64,000 bases of DNA from Selaginella moellendorffii (Eukaryota > Plantae > Lycopodiophyta). How positions within the stretch are numbered: the stretch's first letter is position 1; every line of letters begins with the position of its first letter. The stretch lies in the NCBI RefSeq assembly GCF_000143415.4, contig NW_003314339.1:179751-243750 (forward strand), given 5' to 3'. A program made the translations under genes and the position numbers. Of this stretch, positions 12,813 to 60,657 are shown one piece after another. The notes under the pieces were generated by a model. That model saw only the letters and a program-made list of their open reading frames with translations, was not told where the DNA came from and made no database searches.

Positions 12813-15072
12813 CAAAGAGTGGTAGGCAATACACATTCGCATTGAACCGTCCTTCTTCTTCACAAGCAAGACTGGAGCACCAAATGGAGACTTACTTGGC
12901 TGAATAAATCCAAACTCAAGTAACTCCTTGACTTGTCGTTGAACTTCCTTATCCTCTGCATAACTTAACCGAAATGAACGCCGGTAAATTAGCTGCATGC
13001 CTGGCTCTAATGTAATCCCATGCTCCACACCTCGTAACGGAGGCAATCCATGAGGAAGTTTAGATAGAAAAACATCAGAAAACTCGTCAAGTACATCCCA
13101 TACTGCTACTTCTCCCCACACGTGCCTTGGTCCCCCAAGTCATGAACAAACAACAAGTAACTCCAAAGTGCTTTTCCATTACGACAAGCCCGCTTTAAAA
13201 ATGTAGCAAAGAGCATAATAACTGGTGGCTGAACGCCCTCGCCAAACTACACATCTTTAACGCCACCATACTTCAGCAAAATACGCTTAATACTCCACTT
13301 TATCTTTGAATCCACCTTCACCAACCATGGTATCCCAAGAATGAGATCCACACAATGGATATCCGTGAGATAAAAAGTCTCCACAAGTGTGGTTTTGCCA
13401 ACCAACACTTCCAACCCCTCGACACAAGCATCGAAATGTTGAGTAGAGGTAGCTACACCTCCCACTATGTATGGAAGAACTCCGTGTGTGACCAAGCCAT
13501 GCTCCGCAACAAACTTTGCCGAAACAAAGTTGTCATCGCTCCCACTATCCAGTAAAATCTGCACTGGATTGCCTTGGAACACGCCCTCCAGCATTAAAGC
13601 TGATTCATGCGTATCCTCGAACTCCATCTTGTTCCACACATAGTTGAGCTGACGAGTAACGATCGAAAGTCTCTTCCTCCGACCGGAATGGTCATTTTCG
13701 TCATCCTTATGCTGCAAAGTTTGCAACTTTTTAGTATCTGACTTACCGTGAGAAGAAGATTGGCCATTCTTCTTGTCCTACTACTTGTTCTTCAACTGCA
13801 GACAATTAGCCTTGTAGTATCCAAGTTCGCCGCAATGATGACAACCCTGTATATAATTCTTCATAAAGAACTTTTGCTTCTTGGACCCCTTTGCATCCGA
13901 AGTAGTCACCACTGACTTCAACTTGTGATGCTTGTTCCCATCCTTGTGTCCATGGCGATCATCACGACAATTCTTGACAGAAGGACTCCGTGAACGCTTG
14001 CGAGATTTGTGCTTATCATTGTCAAGTCGACGAGCTGCATCAAAGAGCACCTCCAAACTCTTTTTAGGTTGAGAATGACGCAAGTGTTGCTGCATGCTCT
14101 CACTATGTAAGCCATCAATGAAGTAGGACTTATTCTGATCTGGATCTTTCGTTGGAACATGACTAATCAAGCGAGTAAGCTTTTCAATATAGTCCCCGAG
14201 CGTCATTTTCCCTTGCTGGAAATGTTGAAGTTCTATACGAGCATTCTCCATGTTGTAATAAGGGGCAAAATGTCAACGGAAAGCAGCCTCAAACTCATCC
14301 ATGATAGACACTAGTGGTTTCTTATCCGCATTATGAGACTCCTCAAGCTAATTTCACCATTGAAGACTTGCATCATGCAAAACCATTGGAATAGCCACTA
14401 AAGCCTTTGCATCTGGAGTTCCTCTAGCAGCCAAGAACTTCTTCACATTGGCTAGCCAAGCGAGACACTCGTCCATACCACCATTACCGAAAAAAGTTGG
14501 AATCTTGAGTCGATCTACCAAAGAAGGCTTACTTGGAGCGCTACCCTGTCCAGCCTCAAGTGCCTCAACACGCCCACGCATGGTATCCATCATGCCATGC
14601 ATCTCATCTTGCATCTCTTGCTGATTTCGATTAAGGGCTCGCAACTCATGAACCACATCTTGAATGGTCCAAATCTCCATAGCTTCGTCAACATCATCGT
14701 CAGCACCACCATCGACAATAGGATTCCAGTGTTCAACTTAGTCGGCCATCGCAACCAACTCCTCTGATACCAATGTTATGATCTGGCGCAAAAAGACAGA
14801 TATCGAATCACCCTAGACTATGCTATGCCTCACCACCCAACCACCCCCAAGCTACCTCAAAAGCTCCATTGCACCGCCGCTCCACTGTGAGCCCTAGGGT
14901 AGGTTAAGTCCCTTACCCTAACATGCCTTGAGCCTCCCTTTGACCGATGTTGACCACGTGGCCAAAGCTGGTGCCTAACACTTGCCCAAGCTCGATCTTG
15001 GGCACTTTAGGGGCCAGAGGGGCTGAGGTTATTTCAATAACTTTACCCCCCTTGGTAGCCAAAGTGCCCAAG
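12813..15072 (-). mobile_element. 5' half of a Ty3/gypsy element (LTR remnant, PBS, gag, protease, start of RT)
   Basis: LTR end at 14774; iMet PBS TGGTATCAGAG at 14772-14762; gag 14680-13781 with a damaged zinc knuckle CHHCGELGYYKANC; protease LLDSGS (13247..13726); RT start SPFGAPVLLVKKKDGSMRMC, truncated. Confidence 0.92.
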
Positions 15073-25966: not shown

Positions 25967-28455
25967 TGTAAGAGATTAATTTTTCCATTCTACTTTAGTC
26001 ACTTAACCATACCTCCGACCACTATGAGGAGTCTCCTTCACAACCTCCATAAGTCCCACTCAGGATTTGGGGCTTGCTCGCTTCGAGAATGGCATCCATG
26101 CCACTCAACCTTCGCATTTGGTCCAAGTGCTCCACATGTCTGATCCCATGATCAACACCCCAAGGCACCACTGACATATTAGCTCGTTACGCTAGGCCAT
26201 GCCCATTCACCTTGGTCACATCGATGGCCCAACACCATTTGCATTGCAATCTTGTTTCTCCAAGACTAGGCCATTTGTCCATGAGTGGTCATCCTAGATC
26301 CACTCCTTAGCATTCTTAGGATGCCCGTAGACATGGGGAATAGCCTTCCCCAATACCTCCTTTTCGGTCCTCACCAAGTCCCTTTTTGTCCATGACCGTG
26401 TTCACCAACACTGCCACTGGATCAAGGCCCACAGGCCTAACCACCAAGTCCTATGCTCCTCTAGGACTGCCTCACCGTGTGACTGTGTCCTTGGTCACCA
26501 CCCCAAAGGGCTACTCCTCTTCCTTTCTACAGACTTGGCCTTTCAGACAACATTTCGGAGCACCGTGGCCCTACTCGAGCCTCATGGTGTAATGCACCTT
26601 ATCTCTCTCCCCTTAAGCCAACTGGAAAAGAGGCAATTGTTTGATGAGAGAGCCCTTAGTGGCTATTTTATCCCCATTTATCCCCCAAGGTTCCAAGGAT
26701 CCACGGTGACAGTATATCTAAATCTCATCCCATGATCACGTGCGCTACACATGGGTACTCTCCCCGCCTTCCACCTTTGGGTGCTCTAGCTATAGGCTTA
26801 GAGTGAGGTTTTGTTGAGCCATGCCAGGTATCCAAGTAGGTAGTGCCACCCACACTTGGACTGGGAGCATCAACCATTCAATCTCCCGGGGGAACTAGAG
26901 CCGGCTCTTGAACACTTCACTAAGCTACCCCGCTTGTCAATCCGTATTCACTCTAGTCTTGGACTTCCCAGTGGTCAGCTCGTCACCCAACACCTAGGTA
27001 TAGCTTTCCTTGGCAAAACTGGCCTTTCCTGGCTCTATTGAGCTTCAACCCCCACACTCCCTACTATACTTTTGGAACCCCCCCCCCGCCCCCGAGGGGA
27101 TGATCACTTTGGGCTTTCACCGAACAACCTGTATTAGTATTCGGACTCGGACTCAGACTTGAACTCGGACTCGGACTTGGTCTCGGTCCTGGTTTCAGAC
27201 TTGGACTCGGACTTGGTCTCGGTCTTGGTCTCGATTCCATCTCGGACTCCATCTCGGGTCCATCTCAGACTCCATCTCGGACTCCATCTCGGGTCCATCT
27301 CAGACTCCATCTCGGACTCCATTTCGGGTCCATCTCGAATTTCATCTCGGGTCCATCTCGGACTCCATCTTGGACTCCATCTCGGACTCCATCTTGGGTC
27401 CATCTCGGACTCCATCTCGGACTCCATCTTGGGTCCATCTCGGACTCCATCTTGAACTCCATCTCGGGTCCATCTTGGACTGGGTCCATCTCAGGTCCAT
27501 CTTGGACTGGGTCCATCTCGGACTCCATCTCGGACTTCGTCTCGGTCTATCTCGGACTCCATCTCGGGTCCATCTCGGACTCCATCTCGGACTTCGTCTC
27601 GGTCTATCTCGGACTCCATCTCGGGTCCATCTCGGACTCCATCTCGGACTCCATCTCGGACTCCATCTCGGACTCCATCTTAGATCCATCTCGGACTCCA
27701 TCTCGGTCCACCTTAGACTCCATCTCGAACTCCATCTTGGGTCCATTTCGGACTCCATCTCAGACTCCTTCACGTGTCATGTGTTGGTATTTTTGGGTCC
27801 CTTTTTAGAGCCTCGCTTATTGCTCGCTAGCACCTTCAACTAGGGTATTTGTTCCCCCAACTTGCCAATCTCATCTAGCAAGTCATTCGGCCAATGTAAT
27901 ATGGTTCATGCATAAGCGTGAAAGTCCTTAACCATCGACTTTCATTCAAAGCCGTTTATTTGAACACTTGGGAACTACTTCCCCAACCTTGATAGCCTTG
28001 CCTCATAGACAGCTTCAAGATCATGCTTCTGCTGCGCCACTTTGATTTCGCGCGCTCTAGGAACCATTTACACTTGGCTTTCTAGGTACTTATCTACCTA
28101 GAATTTTCTTCGGGAACTTTCAAGGAACTCTGTTCTTTAGCTTGCTAAGGCTTCTCCTTTGCAAACTCCCTACTCACCATATGGTCTAACATGAATAATT
28201 CCACATTTTAGATTCTTTATGGCACCGCGGTTGCTAGTAACAACATCCTCGAGCACCCTCTTGATTCTCCACTCCCAACTTGCAAAACCACTATTAGTTA
28301 TGCCCTTTCATTTCTATAGTTCAGTTCCATCCCAATACTTCTTGCTTTTTGGCCTCATATGTTTTCTTTAGTTATTCTCCTCCAGACTAGGAGGATAGCT
28401 TTGCACCTTCTACCATGCCTTAGCAAGTATTCATAGGGATGAACTTACCCAATAA
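25967..28455 (-). mobile_element. Family B 3' LTR (partial) plus internal fragment, opposite orientation
   Basis: Begins TGTAAGAGATTAATTTTTCCATTCTAC, the reverse complement of the B LTR end, with no PBS beyond it. Jumps to B internal sequence at ~27829. Confidence 0.85.
26588..26749. mobile_element. 162-bp solo LTR (TRIM-sized) nested in a B LTR
   Basis: TGTA...TACA ends, perfect 5-bp TSD CATGG (26583-87 and 26750-54); absent from the other B LTR copies. Confidence 0.9.
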
Positions 28456-34362: not shown

Positions 34363-37300
34363 TGTAAGCGACTAAATTTTCCATTCTACTTTAATCACTT
34401 AACCACACATTTGACCACTTGGAGGAGTCTCACTCACAACCTCCGTAAGTCCTATTTTGGATTTAGGGACTTGCTAGCCCTAAGAATGGCATCCATGCCA
34501 CTCAACCATTGCACTTGGTCCAAGTGCTCCACGTGTCCAATCCCATGACTGACACCCCAAGGTACCACCAACATATCAGCCTGTTACGCTAAGGCCATGC
34601 CCATTCACCTTGGTCACATCGGTGGTCTGACACCACCTACATCACAGTCCCGTCTTTCAAAGACTGGGCCATCTGTCCATGAGTGATCATCCCAGATCCA
34701 CTCCTTAGCATCCTTAGGATGCCTATAAATATGGGGAATAGCCTTCCCCAATACCTCCTTTTCGGTCCTCACCAAGTCTCTTTTTGTCCATGGCTGTGTT
34801 CGCCAACACTGCCACTGGATCAAGGCCCACAGGCCCGACCACCAAGTCCCACGCTCCTCTGGGACTGCCTCACCGTGTGACTGTGTCCCTAGTCACCACC
34901 CTAGAGGGCTACTCCTCTTCCTTTCCACAGACTTGGCCTTTCGGACAATATTTCGGAACACCGTGGCCCTATGCGAGTCTCATGGGTACTCTCCCTACTT
35001 TCCACCTTTGGGTGCTCTAGCCATGGGCTTAGAGCGAGATTCCGTTAAGCCACGCCAAATATCCAAGTAGGTAGTGCCACCCACACTTGGACTGGGAGCA
35101 TCGACCATTCGATCTCCCGGGGGAACTAGAGCCAGCTCTTGAACACTTCACCAAGTTACAGCGCTTGTCAATCCATATTTACTCTAGTCTTGGACTTCCC
35201 AATGGTCAATTCATCATCCAACACCTAAGTATAGCCTTCTTGGGCTAAACTGGCCTTTCTTGGCCAAACTGGCTCCACTGGGCTCCAACCCCCATATTCT
35301 CTCTACTATACTTTTGGAACCCCCCATGCCCCCCCCCTTCCACTTCCACCCCCCCCCCAAGGGACGATCGCTTTGGGCTTTCACCCAACAACTTGTATTA
35401 GTATTCGGACTCGAATTCGGACTCGAACTTGGTCTTGGTCCCGGTTTCGGTCTCGGGTCCATCTCGAACTCCATCTTGGACTCCATCTTAGACTCCACTG
35501 TAAACTCGTGAACGGAAGCTGAGAGCCGCAGCTCTCCCGAGAGCCTCGCTCTCTTGACACCCTACCCCTTGGGTCGAGCCCAGCGGGAGCAAACTGGACC
35601 AGCCAGATGTCAATCAACATGTGGTGTGATTCCTTTAGCCAACCAACAGAGTCGGACCCGAGACCCCTCTGATACCAAATGTAAACTCCTGAATTTGGAC
35701 TTCCCGGGAGGTCACCCAACCCAGTACTATTCAAACCCAAGGACGCTTAACCCCAAGTATCCCAAGACCCTTAACCAATTGGAAAAGGGGGTGCACTCTT
35801 GTTCATGGGCCCTTTCCCTCTATATTTGAACCCCATGGATCGTCTCTCAAGTCGTTCCCTTTGGTTGCTTACATCCACCTTGGACTCTATCTTGGGTCCA
35901 TTTCGGGTCCTCTTGCGTCCCTTTTATAGAGACTCACTTATCACTCATTTCGTGCTTGTTCCTCGAGCCTTTCGTTGGGAGTTCCACTCCCGCTCTTGAC
36001 CTTTTAAGTCAAAGTTTTTGGTCCAAACGTGTTATGCTCGTTTGGCTTTCTCTTTGGCCATTACCACGTGGCACCCTTCCGGCTCCACTTTGGGGCCTAG
36101 GGATTTTGTGTTTCACAACTCCACCACTCATAAATGAAGTTCGATATCCTCATCGAACGATAAATTGTTTTATAAAGTAATACTAACATGTATTACCCTT
36201 TCCATTCTTGGCACCTCTCCAATATTCGTCAATGGTTTGATACCGAAGGCTTACCATGCCTTGCCCATCCTTCAAGGAGTATAGTCTCTCCAACTTAAAG
36301 ACTGATTATACCACTTGTGGTGGTTCTCTCCTTTTATTGGTTTAGTTTTCACTAAACCTGTTAGACCATTGTCTCTATCTCAACCCCACTACTCCTTCTT
36401 GAGTAATCTCAGTTTATATCGATATAACCTTTGCACCTTGGAACTTTTTACTTTTGATTTCTCAAAGTTAATTTTCTTGTCTCCAACACCTTGCATTGCA
36501 CATATTGTGCAACTCCACTTCCCCATCCTAGGAAGTTCTCTACTTGAGAGGGCACCATCATCTTCTTTTCTATTTTGTGCCACCTTAAGCACTAAGTTCC
36601 AATTATCATAATTTGTGCTAAGGCTGTCCATAACCCTATCATTTGGCTACCTCACCGCTCCCTCCTTTGGAGCTTCCACTTTTGCCAAATCGGAGCAATT
36701 AGGAATTCATCCTTAGAAACACATTGCTTTTCCCACAACTCGTTAGCACCCAACACATTAATGTTTTTGGTGTAATTTTGCCTTTTGGATTCTTTCCCAT
36801 GATTCCCATGACTCTTTCTTAGCCATTAGTCTTTTGCTCATATCCTTGATTGTTGCACCCAGCAACATCGGATCACTACCTCCATTCTCGAGGTATCATT
36901 TCGGTTCCATAGCAAAGACATTGCTTTGCCAAGTCCAGTGGGTTTTCACCCTTAGTACATCTCTTTAGCATTTTCTACTGTGGGCTCTATCCTTAGCCCA
37001 ACTTTGTGACCCTCCTATGGGTCTTTTATAAAGACTACTTTTTTCGGACTCACTATACCATCACATAGTCACAAATCATTTCCCTTAGGTGTTTTTCCCA
37101 CTTGGTCACCTTGACCAAACCACACCATCATCAATAGTTCAAACCAACACTTTGAACTAGGAACTTCATCCCTTAACCTCACAAGGACCTTGTCCTTGTT
37201 TTAGCCATAAGATCACTTAATGATCACACCTTGGCACTTTAACAAGTTTGCTAATAGGTATTAAGTCTTCCAAACCTTTAAGTTGTTCACTATAACCCTA

Positions 37301-39326
37301 GGGGCATCCCCCACACTTGGCGGTGCACCCAAGCCAGCCCTTCTGGCTAAGGGTCCATAACAATTGAGATTGGGTGTCCCCATCTCATTCACCACGTCTT
37401 TGGTGCCACTCGCACCAAAGTGTTCAAGTTAAATATGCCGAGCCACACTAAGCAATCTAACCGTGCATCACGACTCCAGGGCATCCCCTATTTGGCGGTG
37501 TGCCCAAGCCAGTCTTCTTACTTAGAGTCCATGACCACCGAAAAATGAGTGTCCTCATATTTCAAACCATCACCACGCCCTAGTGAATTAAGACTCAAAC
37601 CCAAGCACTAGAGGGTCGGGACTCAAACCCAACCTTTGTATATGTATCTACGGAAAGCATCATCCAAGATGCTTGGCATGACTCCCCATACCGGTGCACC
37701 AACTTATAATTAAAGCGCGTTACAGATCACAACTTAGGAACCTAGTTCCTTCGCACTGCCAAGTCCTCTCACTTGACAAGTCTGTGATCATGCATGGACT
37801 CCTCCATGCTTGGCTCAATGGGCCACCCCTTTCAAATTGGCTCCTTCAACTAAAGTATTTGTTCCCCCGACTTGCCAACCTTACTTAACAAGTCATCCGA
37901 CCACCATAATATGGTTCATGCATAAGCGTGAAAATCTTTAACTATTAACTTTTGTTCAAAGCCTTCTCTTTGAACACTCGGGAACTACTCCTCTAACCTT
38001 GATAGCCTCGCCTCTTAGCAAGCTTCAAGACCACGCTTCTGCTGCGCCAGTTTGATTTTGCACGCTTTATAAACCATTTACACTTGGATTTCTAGGTACT
38101 TATCTACCTAGGGGAACCTTCAAGGAACTTTGTTCCTTAGCTTGCTAAGGCCTTTCCTTTCGCAAGCTTTTCAATTGCCATATGGTCTAATATGAACAAT
38201 TCCATGCTTTAGACTCTCCATGGCATCACAGTTGCTAGTAACAACATGCTTGGGCACCCACTTGATTCTCCACTCCCAATTGGCATAACCACCCTTGGTT
38301 ATACAATTCGAGTTCTATGGTTTGGTTCTATCCTCTTACTATTTGCTTTTGGCCTCACACCTTTTCTTCGGTTATTCTCCTCCAGACTAGGAGGGTAGCT
38401 TTGCACTTTTTATTATGCCATAACAAATATTCTTAGGGATGAACCTACCTGATAGCATAGGGAGTGGTTCCTCAATCGGGGTATGATTAACTTATAATCC
38501 CATACACCGAGATTAACATTCCTATTTATGGGCTTTTATATGCCCATCATTAGCCTTGCCAAAATTCCATTTTGGCTTTGTCTAATTTAGGTAGATAGTC
38601 TTCTCTTGTCTCTACAACCTTGCACGTTTGAATAGCACTTTCTATCCATCATTCGCTAGGAACTTAGTCCCTTGGGCCTTATCTATTGCCCTTGCGACAC
38701 TAAACACCACCTCCTGGTGTTCTAAAGTGTTTGGGTGTCCTAATGATGGCTTCCTTGACAATGAGCATTTCCTTTTACGACATTGACTTACTATATCGCA
38801 ACATAAACAATTTATCCCCCGTAAGGATATATCTAACTTCCTTATGCCATTAAGCAGTCTTGGGTAGCTACCTTTTACCCGTTTAAGTAATTATTTTGCA
38901 CTTCTTGCTTAGTTGCTTTATAATTGTCAAATCCTACAACTCATTGCTAGTGCTTCCACACCTCTATTATTATCTGGGTTACCACACTCCAATCGCATGC
39001 CTTCCAACTTATGCTATGCCATTTCCATTCCCATTAGGATTCCTTTAGGAAGGGGTTCTCATGAACCCACCAACTTGACCTCAAGGTAACACGCCTTGGC
39101 ACATTCGGTGTCTTCACATCATCAGCTCTACAAGCCTACCTTTACGACACTCCCTACTTGTGTTGACGTCTTTGCCAAGACCAAAGTAGTCATTTCTCAT
39201 GCCAACTATCAGTTAGCACTGCACCATAGTGTTCACACACAACTCTATGCCAAAGTTGCTTTCTTTTGGGGAACACCTTTCCCACGATTTTAGTATGGCA
39301 CATTCTGCCATCGATGAGATACCCTA
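34363..39326 (-). mobile_element. Family B element: 3' LTR 34363-36117 plus internal region, 5'-truncated
   Basis: LTR TGTAAGCGAC...TTTCACA; PPT-like ACTCCACCAC at 36118; internal region is the reverse complement of 18.1-21.0 kb. Confidence 0.88.
35499..35873 (-). mobile_element. Cassandra-like TRIM carrying 5S rRNA promoter boxes
   Basis: TSD TCCAC (35494-98 and 35874-78); 5' LTR 35873-35680; 5S-like segment 35751-35697; PBS TGGTATCAGAG 35677-35667; PPT AAGGGGTAGGG 35570-35560; 61-bp terminal TG..CA unit 35559-35499. Confidence 0.85.
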
Positions 39327-48542: not shown

Positions 48543-48733
48543 TGTAAGCAACCAAAGGGAACGACTTGAGAGACAATCCATGGGGTTCAAATATAGAGGG
48601 AAAGGGCCCATGAACAAGAGTGCACCCCCTTTTCTAATCGGTTAAGGGTTTTGAGATATTTGGGGTTAAGTGTCTTTGGGTTTGAATAGTATTGGGTTGG
48701 GTGACCTCCCGGGAAGTCCAATTTCAGGCTTAC
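48543..48733 (+). mobile_element. Second Cassandra-like LTR (lone)
   Basis: Reverse complement of 35680-35873 with scattered substitutions; 5S-like segment at 48665-48719; no matching TSD. Confidence 0.88.
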
Positions 48734-50740
48734 TTGTTAATTGGTATTGTAAATAGGCCTTGTATAGTTTTCCATGTTGGCATGTCAATTTCACCTCTAT
48801 TGATATTATTTAGTTGCTTTTAGTTTGTGGTGTTGAATTATATTAAGTCTTAGACATAGTGATTTCTTCTTTGATGATATGTCATTTGTAGCTTACTATT
48901 GTTGAAAGTTTTCTCTTGAATACTAAGTAAGTATTTTTAACCTTTGTTAGTTTGGTTGCTAAAAAGGTATGAATGGTGGTTCACTCGTTTTCTTGTAGCA
49001 TTGTTCTAGTATGATAGTATTGAAGTGATGCCTTAATATTGATATTGTTAGGTTGAAGTGATATGAGATGTTTTCTTCATGAGCATAGTTGAATTAGAAT
49101 TTCCATCTATAGTGATAGATGGTTAGGGATTGGTTAGAGCTCATTGGACATAAACATTTTTTTTTCACTAGTCTCAATGAAGATGGTGTTAATAGTTGAC
49201 TGTACCTTTGTGCCATTGGCATTTATGCATTTTTTTAATTAACAACTATGTTGGCATTCAAATAAATTGAGTGGCAAGTTAAGTTAATTGTGTTATAGAT
49301 GAGATTATTTAGTAGGGTTGAGTTTTGTCTTTTCCTTGAAAAGTGATATGGTCATAGATTATACTAACTTTACAAGAGGAAAAGTTAATGATTGCTTGGA
49401 GTTGTTATATACTTGTTAAAGTTTATCTGAAGTTTAATTAGTCATTGATAATTCTTCTTATACTTGTTATGAAATGAATTACATTTTGCTGTAGAAGATG
49501 GATTAATAGAGGATTATTTAATGATCACAAGTAGTAAGCGCTTCGAGATCGTGGCAAGATGGTCTCTTGGGTTTGAGATATTAGTAGGATGTTACTACAC
49601 TTACTTGATCAACTTTAGTTCTTTAGTGTTGTTGACAGAAATCTATTCAAATCAGTTAATATGATGATTGGCATGAATGAGTGTTTATTGGCCTTGCAAC
49701 ATTTATTTTATTCTGTTAATTGTTGCTACAATTGATTCTACTAGATTAGAGTGTTATTTCCCTCAGTGATACATTCACAAGCATTATGCTTGTATATCAT
49801 CAATACTTTGTGTTCTTTAAATTATCTTTCATAAATTGTTGACATATTATCGGCAATCTTTAGTAGTTAAGTTTTTTCATTATGTTTACTTAATGGTATA
49901 CTTACTATTAAATATTGTTGGATGGTTAATCTTATGTCTTCAACCTATGATGATCTTGATGATTCCTATTCTATCCTAGTTTATTAGATGATAACTTGGT
50001 TTAGACTAAAGTATAGGAGATTGATGCTATTAGCTAAGAAAATTTTGCTTCGTAAGGAGTTCCCATCTTATTATGTTTTACACTGGCTAGTGACAAAAAC
50101 CTCTGTGTATTGAGGTCTAGTCCCTCAATATTGCTAAATGATAGCTTACTGTGTCTGCCAAAACACCCTCACTATTATGCCCTATATGTTTATTCCATTG
50201 GGTTTTATTGACTATTTATGGAAAGTGTCCAAATCTGTTAGTGAGGCATATCTATGGAAGGTAGAGATTGTTTTGAACACAATTGTATTATTTTTGCGTC
50301 CAAATTCACAATTTAGCACAATTCCATATTTAGTAAGTTTTATGATTATCCCAAAGACTAACTTTTAGGACTACAGTGAAAGCCCAAAGCGTGAATTCCT
50401 CTAGAGGGGACAACACTATAGAGGGTTCTAAATGTATATTAGGGATAGTGTATAGGTCAAGCATGGCCAACCAACCTAAAGCACGTTAGACCACTAGTAT
50501 GCTAAAATAGTGTTAGACTTCATTTAATTCCATTTTGTGTGTTGGCCCTGACATTGGGATATTGGATGCTTTAAGATTGTTCCAAAATCACTCCATGCTC
50601 CTTTTCCTTTGTTCTTTAGATTGTACGCTTATAAGCCATTTCGTGCTCTAGTTCCTTTGCTCCTTAGCTGTATGCTCGGGAGTTTGGCTCCATCCCTTTG
50701 TTTAAAGACCCAAGGCCCTAAAACTCAAGTTTTACTCCAA
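48734..50740 (+). mobile_element. Old, AT-shifted family A internal region and LTR remnant
   Basis: Aligns by eye to the reverse complement of ~54100-56910 (without the solo LTR), and from ~50110 to the A LTR. Confidence 0.7.
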
Positions 50741-51216
50741 TTTTAAAAGCTTAGTATTATTATTTATTGTTACTAGCTCCCAATATAATTTACACACTTA
50801 TTGCCTTCCTTAGATATGGTAATCTTGTCTCAAGCTCCCTCTCAAGAATAAAACCCTAATTCTACATTACCCATCACTACCATAGTAGGCCTTTATTCTA
50901 CCATTGAAATTTGATAGGGCAAAAATTTGATTGAAGCATTGCCAACACGAGAGCTGCACAATTTGACAAGTTAGCATGAATCACTAAGAATATAGACAAG
51001 TTTGCATCAGCCTTGAATCTAGTAAGTGTCTCTTCCAGAGTTTGGGACTCTTTATATATATTAGCTCTATAATTACTACAATTATTCGAGTAGTAAGGTA
51101 CCTATCAAATAAACTATTTTGATTTAATGAGCCATTCATAGTTTCACAATACAAAAAAGTTTACACTTACGCATGTATGGCTTAATTTTTTAGATAAGCA
51201 TGACTACTAGCATGAT
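50734..51216 (-). pseudogene. Decayed 18S rRNA gene fragment (5' ~500 nt)
   Basis: Minus strand gives GTAGTCATGCTT..ATTAAGCCAT, GAATGGCTCATTAAATCA, GTAATTATAGAGCTAATA, TGCCCTATCAA, GAATTAGGGTT, GAGAGGGAGC and AAGGAAGGCA in 18S order, with many transitions. Confidence 0.9.
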
Positions 51217-58200: not shown

Positions 58201-60657
58201 TTATAGCAAATGATTGCTACAACCCTTTTCCAACACTTTATGGGCAAACTCAAGGAAACAAGGTACCAACTTAAGCTTAGCATAATGGACCACCATCGAG
58301 AATCCAGTCAAAGCTACTTCAATGTTACTACTTGTAAGTAGACTAGCATCACCATCAACCACTTTGGGGTTGATCATCGTTTAACCAAGCAACTTCGTAA
58401 ACACATTGCTCACTATCACATGGATATGATATAAGTATCACAATGAGTTGATCATCAATTGAGTAACACCACGAGCAATGCCAATGTCATTACTTCAAAG
58501 GTTTATGTGACTATCAAGTGCCAACTCAATTCGACAAAATGCAACATAAATGCCACACTCCACCGATAGAGATTTACAACACTGAACACCACCAACTTTT
58601 GTTCACAACACGGACAAGCTCATGCCACTCGCTTTTCGACCAAACTCAAAACTTAACCCAACACCAAGCTACTCAAGGAGCAATAGCAAGGTTCCCCGGA
58701 AAAGAATTGAGCATTGCAACCCAAGTCTTCCAATAGCAAGCCTAGACAAAATGGTATAGCGCTTCACTGCTATCCATCCCATAACTCACCATTTGTAAGA
58801 CCATCATCTCCAACATGTATCAAGATAGGGACTCTTGATTGCATGATGTGAACACGAGCAATGAGTCACCCCTCGTTGCAAATCATCTCTCCAAGAAGAG
58901 AAGATGATTTACGTGTTTGATCCTTTGTCCCCGACGACTCTCTTTTCGGTCTTATCTTTTGACTTCACCTCAAGCTTGCTTTCGCACTGCCTTCAGTCCA
59001 ATCCAAGAAAAGTTTATGAGAGAGTACGGCAATGATTACTTGAACCAATAGACTAATCCCTACAGTCTTGACTGATCCACTTGTAACCATGCCTAGGAAG
59101 GATCCACTAGTGCCATGCTAAACAGCTACAGACCAGCCTATTTGCCACTCATAGCAAACTCAGGGAAGGTTTGCTCTTACCCACGGTACATGGAACAACT
59201 CATGGAACCACTGAGAGGCTAACATTAATCCTGCCAACTCAAAGTGTAACCTTAAGTTGCTAATGTGCCTCACTCACGAGCCCAAGCATAAACTCGTGTA
59301 ACCAGAACAACTCAATCCCTTTTGTGAGCCCAAGCTCAAGCTTACAGAATATGGTACAAAAGGTAACCAAAATCATACCCAAGGAACGAATGTGAACCCT
59401 TTGCACCAAACGTGTACCCACTCGGATCATCGTCTTCATCTCTGCGTATGCAATGAGACTAGTTGCCCAATCTCATTGGATAGTACTCGCCGAGACTCAC
59501 TCTCTGATACCAAATGTAGCGCATGTGGTTTTGACCCTTTATCCTATGGTGATTTACCATAGGATAACACCACGAAGCGGAACCTAACCCTCTTTGTGCC
59601 ATGTGACAGATGCCATGTGTCACATGCCATGTGTCCATGCCACGTGTCCATAGGAACCCGAGGTTCAGGGCCTTGGGCCACTGAACGAAGGAACGGTGCC
59701 AAACTCCCAAGCATGGAGCCAAGGAGTGATGGAACCGAACCACGGAGCAACTCCCAAGCATGAAGCCCAAGGAGCGAAAGGACAGGAGCCCGGAGCGACT
59801 TGGAACAGTCCTGGAGCAACCAGCATCCCAATGCCAGGACCAGCACGCAAAATGGAGCCAAACGGAGTCTGGCGCTATTTCGACATACCGGTGGCCTAAC
59901 GCGAGGACATGGGTACTCCACCAACTAGCATGGAATGGAACTTGGGCTTAGACCCAAGCCGGACGCAGAACAAGGACAGGCACGCAAGCGGGAGCTAGAC
60001 TATGCCTCAGGTTGGTCGGCCATGCCCGACCTACCCACTATCCCTACTATACATTTGGAACCCCCCATAGCCCCCCCCCTTGAGGAACACATGCTTTGGG
60101 CTTTCACCCCAAGCCTCCCTTAGTATCAGGAGTTAGTCTCTGGGACAAGCTCGAAACTTACTAAATATGGAATGTCCCTAGATTGCGAATTTGGACACGG
60201 GACGAACACCATTGTGTTCAGGACAATCTCTACATTCCGTAGATATGCCAAATAAGCAAATCTGGACACTTTCCATAAATAGCATTTGGGACCGAAATGA
60301 GACTAACACAAAAGGCATGATAGCGAGGGTGTTTGGCAGACACGGTAAGCTATCATCTAGCAATATTGAGGGACCAATCTCAATATCACGGGGGTTCTTG
60401 ATACTAGCAAGTGCACGCCAATGACAGGAGTTTCTCAAACCAGGCCGAGTATGCTCAGCAAGAAACACATAGGGTTCCTACCTTATGTTTATCCGATCTA
60501 AGTACACGGTCATTGACCAGTTTCTCAACTAGCTCAAGTGGGAAACTGATAACGGGTCCAGCAATACCGACCTCCTGCCATCGTGGCAGTAAGGTAAGAG
60601 TGTCCGTAAGGACTAGCCGACAGGTAACTTTCGATACCCGAAGTCACATTCGCGACA
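52281..60657 (-). mobile_element. Full-length family A non-autonomous LTR retrotransposon (LARD-like)
   Basis: LTRs 52281-53424 and 59515-60657 (~99% identical by eye); TSD TCGGC; iMet PBS at 59512-59502; PPT AGGGGGGAGAG ending at 53425; no long internal ORF. Confidence 0.95.
55267..56413 (+). mobile_element. Solo LTR (family D, B-related), 1147 bp
   Basis: TGTAAG...CTTACA ends; TSD TAAAT (55262-66 and 56414-18); GC-rich, with a GAGTCC-type minisatellite. Confidence 0.92.

Follow-up and report, generated by a model that had tools for sequence, protein, structure and literature searches.

The DNA analyzed here (the window) is a stretch of 64,000 nucleotides from Selaginella moellendorffii (contig NW_003314339.1, positions 179,751 to 243,750), in which position 1 is the first letter. 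Direct reading of this sequence reveals, on the minus strand, an insert of 375 bp (35873..35499) flanked by a 5-bp target-site duplication. Read along the minus strand, the first GTGGA is followed by a 194-bp unit, TGTAAGC..GAGTTTACA (35873..35680), by the dinucleotide TT, and by TGGTATCAGAGG (35677..35666), which serves as the candidate primer-binding site (PBS). About 108 bp beyond the PBS lies the purine tract AAGGGGTAGGG (35570..35560), and after it come 61 bp reading TGTCAAG..GAGTTTACA (35559..35499) and then the second GTGGA. The original prediction for this locus was a TRIM of the Cassandra type, carrying 5S rRNA sequence and bounded by two different LTRs; all of the sequence features that it described, including the 375-bp insert with its TCCAC duplication, were found in place (Table 1).

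TABLE 1 Features of the insert, its host sequence, and a related LTR copy in the window
Feature	Position	Strand	Remark
Host 12-nt minisatellite	35403..35498, array resuming 35874-35906	.	Within 3.8-kb repeated element 34363-38194
Target-site duplication, upstream copy	35874..35878	-	GTGGA in element sense, TCCAC on plus strand; identical 5-mer on both sides
Target-site duplication, downstream copy	35494..35498	-	Identical 5-mer on both sides
5' LTR, 194 bp, TG..CA	35680..35873	-	Contigs genome-wide enter varied flanks at either border; second copy at 48543-48728
T4 run, LTR positions 88-91	35783..35786	-	Just upstream of 5S-like part; sequence reading
Two box-A-like motifs, GGTTAAGGGTCTTGGG and GGTTAAGCGTCCTTGG, 24 nt apart	35737..35776	-	Direct-repeat family D5, 81% identity; the upstream motif is the duplicate
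5S rRNA-derived segment, LTR positions 104-191	35683..35770	-	Rfam RF00001 match; 5S-like reads/contigs overlap 35695-35751
Putative right-breakpoint marker TTCAGGAG, 5' LTR positions 181-188	35686..35693	-	Marks the site in the lost 3' LTR; direct-repeat family D6
Presumed primer-binding site TGGTATCAGAGG	35666..35677	-	11/12 to plant initiator-Met tRNA PBS; 2 nt past LTR
Internal domain kept in the copy, 175 bp, including 55 bp once taken for LTR	35505..35679	-	Even depth; contigs bridge 35559/35560; other copies diverge at 35505
Purine tract AAGGGGTAGGG, then TGT	35557..35570	-	PPT/LTR-start look-alike, internal in the family; crossed by contigs; unique in the window
Putative left-breakpoint repeat TTCACGAG	35505..35512	-	5' arm of the hairpin preceding the family's PPT in other copies
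3' LTR remnant TTTACA, last 6 bases	35499..35504	-	Identical to LTR end; absent from other copies' internal domain
Another LTR copy of the family, truncated at LTR position 186	48543..48728	+	94.6% identity over 186 bp

The insert and its target site

The insert interrupts a 12-nt minisatellite that forms part of a 3.8-kb repeated element. Paralogues of this element occur in the window at 22686-18933, 17286-15073, and 25967-28199; their arrays differ in length, and the Cassandra sequence is absent from them. Excision of the 375 bp together with one GTGGA regains the 12-nt phase of the host minisatellite, and retention of both copies of the 5-mer leaves the array 5 nt off phase. The TCCAC variant of the unit stands on both sides of the insert and is found in only 3 of the 99 units that make up the paralogous arrays of the window. 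The target-site duplication is real, and it is better than chance would provide. We also considered whether the upstream GGTGGA might be the tail of a preceding internal domain, which in other copies reads ..GTGGTGGAT before the LTR, and rejected this because the 5-mer keeps the phase of the host array of 12-mers and a clean empty site can be rebuilt.

TG..CA termini are present in the copy along with the 5-bp duplication. The two ends of the insert are alike at 13 of their 14 terminal bases (TTCACGAGTTTACA versus TTCAGGAGTTTACA; direct-repeat family D6), a longer agreement than the 9 shared terminal bp that had been proposed. As to the host sequence itself, the length of the minisatellite in the 3.8-kb element varies from copy to copy, between about 200 and 500 bp, and genome-wide its array is as abundant as the Cassandra LTR, judging by the read and contig depth at 35442-35487.

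The 5' LTR carries a 5S rRNA-derived segment

Reads and contigs were placed on positions 35350-36020 from same-species DNA contigs (X1), a second organism (X4), a possible-RNA run (X8), and raw RNA reads (X21). At positions 35680 and 35873, contigs enter varied flanks exactly at the LTR borders (loose-end agreement of 0.38 and 0.42, respectively), showing that the 194-bp LTR is correctly delimited. Inside this LTR, the Rfam 5S_rRNA model (RF00001) matches 35770..35683 of the minus strand with 37.4 bits (E value, 3.9e-6). This score is 0.6 bit below the curated cut-off of 38, which is why the match goes unlisted in a default whole-window Rfam scan. The LTR follows the model closely over the 3' two-thirds of 5S rRNA (model positions 58 to 120, comprising box A, IE, and box C). 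Of the 5' half, ∼32 nt are absent, model positions of about 22 to 57 being swapped for 4 nt. The earlier recognition of 5S-like boxes A, IE, and C in the LTR is thus supported by the model search, marginally under its cut-off. We take GGTTAAGGGTCTTGGG and GGTTAAGCGTCCTTGG to be box-A-like motifs on the basis of the Rfam alignment and of general knowledge of 5S promoters. The feature that characterizes Cassandra elements, 5S-derived sequence with predicted internal polymerase III (Pol III) promoter motifs inside the LTR, is therefore present here, as seen from the Rfam match and from the 5S-like reads at 35695-35751. No run of four or more T residues directly follows the 5S-like part of the LTR. 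The T4 run that lies just upstream of this part is a possible Pol III stop if read in a 3' LTR.

The molecules that align at 35695-35751 with at least 88% identity (raw RNA reads and second-organism contigs) extend on both sides as 5S-like sequence and finish in a T10 run. They differ from the Cassandra copy at ∼4 to 5 of the 57 positions and are probably the species' own 5S genes. These cross-mapping 5S-like genes, in runs X4 and X21, have the tail ..GTGACCCCCTC before the T10 run and the sequence ..GGCACTGGATCCCATTAGACCTCC in their 5' half.

Primer-binding site and internal domain

The initiator-Met PBS that had been predicted to follow the 194-bp LTR holds up, with TGGTATCAGAGG matching at 11 of 12 positions; the assignment to this tRNA presumes what is established knowledge of plant initiator-Met PBSs. 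Further PBS motifs of the initiator-Met type, belonging to other LTR elements, occur in the window at 14762-14774 and 59502-59514, both on the minus strand. Folding of the internal-domain RNA gave no unusual stability (z = 0.55) and just two small local hairpins. As a protein query, the longest reading frame that spans the element (105 codons, antisense, 35512-35826) returned no match. Searches of metagenome contigs with the exact 23-nt internal-domain pattern, and with a general Cassandra pattern (5S end, 5- to 35-nt gap, initiator-Met PBS), likewise found nothing.

The 61-bp unit is not a second LTR

Under the original prediction, the 61 bp at the downstream end of the insert are a second, different LTR, and the purine tract before them is its PPT. 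Several properties of the unit show otherwise. In X1, the depth over the unit (35511-35556) is 0.62 to 1.17 M, about that of the internal domain (0.86 to 1.2 M), and the LTR has a depth of 2 to 3.4 M. The supposed PPT/LTR border at 35559/35560 is crossed unbroken by contigs of X1, X4, and X8 (records 1, 2, 10, 17, and 18). Other copies of the family part from the 35499-35873 copy at position 35505 (...CACGAG) and run on into a normal LTR. This joint was observed in two forms. In the direct form, which is documented by five X1 DNA contigs, one X8 contig, and four raw RNA reads of X21, position 35505 is followed immediately by the LTR start (35873). In the alternative form, ∼30 extra bases stand between the two, extending from the 3' arm of a 7-bp hairpin to a purine-rich ..GGGAAGCGTGGTGGAT. 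Loose ends before 35505 in X8 and X21 continue in the element sense as GGCGTGAAC.. and end in ..GTGGTGGAT, and the same purine-rich ..GGGAAGCGTGGTGGAT end recurs in X1, in loose ends that immediately precede the LTR start (behind 35873). No varied flanks are listed in the contigs at 35499, unlike at the true LTR borders 35680 and 35873.

Since the depth of the unit is that of the internal domain, since contigs traverse its start, and since the LTR start follows 35505 elsewhere, the 61-bp unit is not an LTR; it is composed of 55 bp of ordinary internal domain and the last 6 bases of the LTR. What stands of the original prediction is therefore the 5S-carrying, Cassandra-type TRIM with its true duplication, and the two different LTRs fall away as a false lead, given that the unit is contiguous with the internal domain and equally abundant. 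The same applies to the proposed PPT, as the tract AAGGGGTAGGG is internal in the family. The Cassandra PPT that adjoins the LTR start is deleted in the 35499-35873 copy, and other copies have the purine-rich ..GGGAAGCGTGGTGGAT in that place. The internal domain of the family holds a look-alike of a PPT followed by TG, which can mislead annotation into calling a second LTR, in this window and in others from the same genome. The purine tract and TG at 35557-35570 may themselves be left over from a former LTR border or from a different element.

Probable loss of the 3' LTR by deletion

With other copies carrying a regular 3' LTR, the 35499-35873 copy appears as a deletion derivative, in essence the result that the original prediction had named as speaking against two different LTRs. 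Positions 1 to 188 of the 3' LTR and the PPT-proximal end of the internal domain are absent from it, and TTTACA adjoins the duplication. The look-alikes at the two breakpoints, TTCACGAG and TTCAGGAG, agree at seven of eight positions. The mean depth in the bin 35488-35510 is 0.26 M, about what the edges of the neighboring repeats supply, and depth falls over the junction (35490-35504), indicating that few if any other copies have the junction of this copy.

We consider the insert to be an ordinary Cassandra copy from which a deletion, most likely after insertion, took nearly all of the 3' LTR, a reading to which we assign a probability of about 0.78. According to this proposal, a canonical Cassandra-type TRIM would have inserted into the 12-nt minisatellite of the older repeat and generated the 5-bp duplication. 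A later deletion of ∼188 to 218 bp would then have taken the end of the internal domain, including the real PPT, together with positions 1 to 188 of the 3' LTR. The break would have joined two 8-nt look-alikes, one in the internal domain (TTCACGAG) and one close to the end of the LTR (TTCAGGAG), and would have left TTTACA beside the intact duplication. Microhomology-mediated illegitimate recombination or slippage after integration could account for the loss. The size of the deletion is uncertain, because the other copies show the two junction forms (direct, or with ∼30 nt between).

In the standard scheme of reverse transcription, only a complete 3' LTR on the minus strand can serve as template for a 5' LTR with an intact U3. 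Given the intact 5' LTR with its complete U3, the cDNA must thus have contained a full 3' LTR, and we infer that the deletion most likely took place after integration. Deletion at microhomologies is the usual path of decay of plant LTR elements, and copies of LTR retrotransposons are reportedly truncated by illegitimate recombination between short direct repeats (Devos, Brown and Bennetzen 2002; Ma, Devos and Bennetzen 2004). The present copy resembles such truncations in that a few bases of microhomology border its internal deletion and both the termini and the duplication are preserved. Nothing substantive sets it apart from them, its sole peculiarity being that the remaining end mimics a natural LTR terminus (13/14). 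Having neither a 3' LTR nor a canonical PPT, the copy is dead. Nine listed sites set it apart from the majority of the family, and at eight of them the copy has a C>T or G>A change of the cytosine-deamination type, so that it is aged and was probably methylated. By itself it has little significance, being a single decayed member of a TRIM family that is widespread in plants.

The deletion might instead have preceded integration. At the hairpin before the PPT, reverse transcriptase would have switched from TTCACGAG to TTCAGGAG, 188 to 218 nt ahead, during plus-strand completion over the right end of the cDNA, and the shortened cDNA would have integrated normally. Such a switch would agree with the location of the left breakpoint in the loop of a 7-bp hairpin (GTTCACG / CGTGAAC, from the loose-end consensus) and with the duplication and both termini being perfectly intact; the rebuilt end TTCACGAGTTTACA, identical at 13 of 14 positions to the natural (U5) end of the LTR, would also be usable by integrase. 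We nevertheless regard this course of events as unlikely, because the intact 5' LTR needs a complete minus-strand 3' LTR, so that a heteroduplex would have had to be resolved toward the deleted strand. The depth hole at 35490-35504 argues against a recurrent junction, and deletions between short repeats after insertion are common in plant LTR elements. That the shortened cDNA integrated as such, as a one-LTR Cassandra with a right attachment site rebuilt from the internal 8-nt look-alike and the last 6 LTR bases, is in our estimate quite improbable. If it did, the helper integrase would accept an end with only ∼14 nt of LTR identity, and the hairpin before the PPT would be a hotspot of template switching.

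The 61-bp unit would be a second LTR if the element were a recombinant of two copackaged TRIM RNAs or if the ends of the family were asymmetric by design, and the purine tract and TG in front of the unit and the CA end that adjoins the duplication are what such an LTR should have. Both alternatives are very improbable in view of the other copies. In these, as three runs show, the unit continues the Cassandra internal domain unbroken, is as abundant as that domain, and leads into a regular LTR start; the present copy is peculiar only in the last 6 bases of the unit. The want of listed varied flanks at 35499 also sets the unit apart from true LTR borders. We give hardly any credence to an assembly artifact, in which the assembler would have collapsed a full-length copy between short repeats. 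In its favor, the DNA runs used do not cover the unique junction of the copy, but collapse over only eight imperfect bases is not how assemblers fail, and the flanks, the duplication, and the region otherwise are clean. The post-insertion deletion of the 3' LTR from an ordinary copy is therefore the reading that we retain.

Relation to known Cassandra elements

The canonical layout of the family in this genome would be a 194-bp LTR, the initiator-Met PBS, an internal domain of about 175 to 205 bp, and a second 194-bp LTR, amounting to ∼563 to 593 bp, as reconstructed from short contigs, from joints, and from loose-end consensuses of 30 letters. With respect to the two near-identical LTRs of such an element, the present copy has 6 bp of the 3' LTR, and the family-level evidence consists of the joint from internal domain to LTR and the depth profile. 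For the Cassandra family of this genome, the borders of the LTR are thereby fixed, and a probable canonical layout is available in approximate form. The smallest published Cassandra has 563 bp, and elements of ∼600 bp with LTRs of ∼200 bp have been found in Piperales and Polypodiales (PMC10853983), so that the size inferred for the family, with LTRs of ∼200 bp, is inside the published range.

Like the Cassandra TRIMs described so far (Kalendar et al. 2008; Kalendar et al. 2020, PMC7215508; Maiwald et al. 2024, PMC10853983), the element is a short noncoding LTR element that has a 5S segment with motifs resembling box A, IE, and box C, an initiator-Met PBS, and a 5-bp duplication. It departs from them in that the 35499-35873 copy has only one LTR, and in its 5S-like part, which is without ∼32 nt of the 5' half, has a duplicated box-A-like motif, scores 0.6 bit below the Rfam cut-off, and is not directly followed by a run of four or more T residues. 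Cassandra arrays in which LTRs and internal domains alternate in tandem (LTR-internal-LTR) are known (PMC7215508), and the copy is comparable to these arrays and to solo LTRs as a recombination product of the same family. Unlike a solo LTR, it has kept one LTR and the internal domain, the other LTR having been lost through nonhomologous breakpoints and not by LTR-LTR exchange. The ratio of LTR depth to internal depth (∼3:1) suggests that solo LTRs, tandem arrays, or other LTR-only copies are common in this genome.

Expression of the family

In the raw RNA run, no reads were at least 99% alike to the stretch 35350-36020, and expression of this particular locus was thus not seen. Among the RNA reads of the family, the first mate is on the plus strand in nearly all cases, which in most stranded libraries denotes sense RNA. 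These data, which comprise few reads, fit transcription of the Cassandra family in the sense direction, with RNA depth rising at the 5S-like part. Depth is 13 to 16 over U5 and the internal domain, declines over LTR positions of ∼117 to 73, and is 1.7 to 4.6 over U3 (small numbers in each case); the minimum is located just upstream of the T4 run (bin 35787-35809). No cluster of starts or ends was reported for the RNA reads. Within the limits of these small numbers, the profile fits RNAs that start at or near the 5S-like part and end early in the next LTR.

A second LTR copy and an 18S rRNA fragment in the window

The second LTR copy of the family, at 48543-48728, matches the Rfam 5S_rRNA model with 27.1 bits and has many C>T changes. 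The remainder of this element was sought from 48729 onwards with a transition-tolerant alignment, which was patchy and unconvincing, amounting to no match, and a recognizable internal domain was not found there. Positions 48729-48780 (plus strand) are occupied by unrelated AT-rich sequence, with a TTGGTAT motif 12 nt on. The LTR copy stops within a few bases of the inferred right breakpoint of the main copy, which could be a coincidence or could point to a fragile spot. About 2 kb from this truncated LTR, in AT-rich DNA that is rich in transposable elements, lies an isolated fragment of 18S rRNA (50672-51201, minus strand; Rfam SSU_rRNA_eukarya, 177.7 bits) that covers model positions 28 to 600 only and looks like an rDNA pseudo-fragment.
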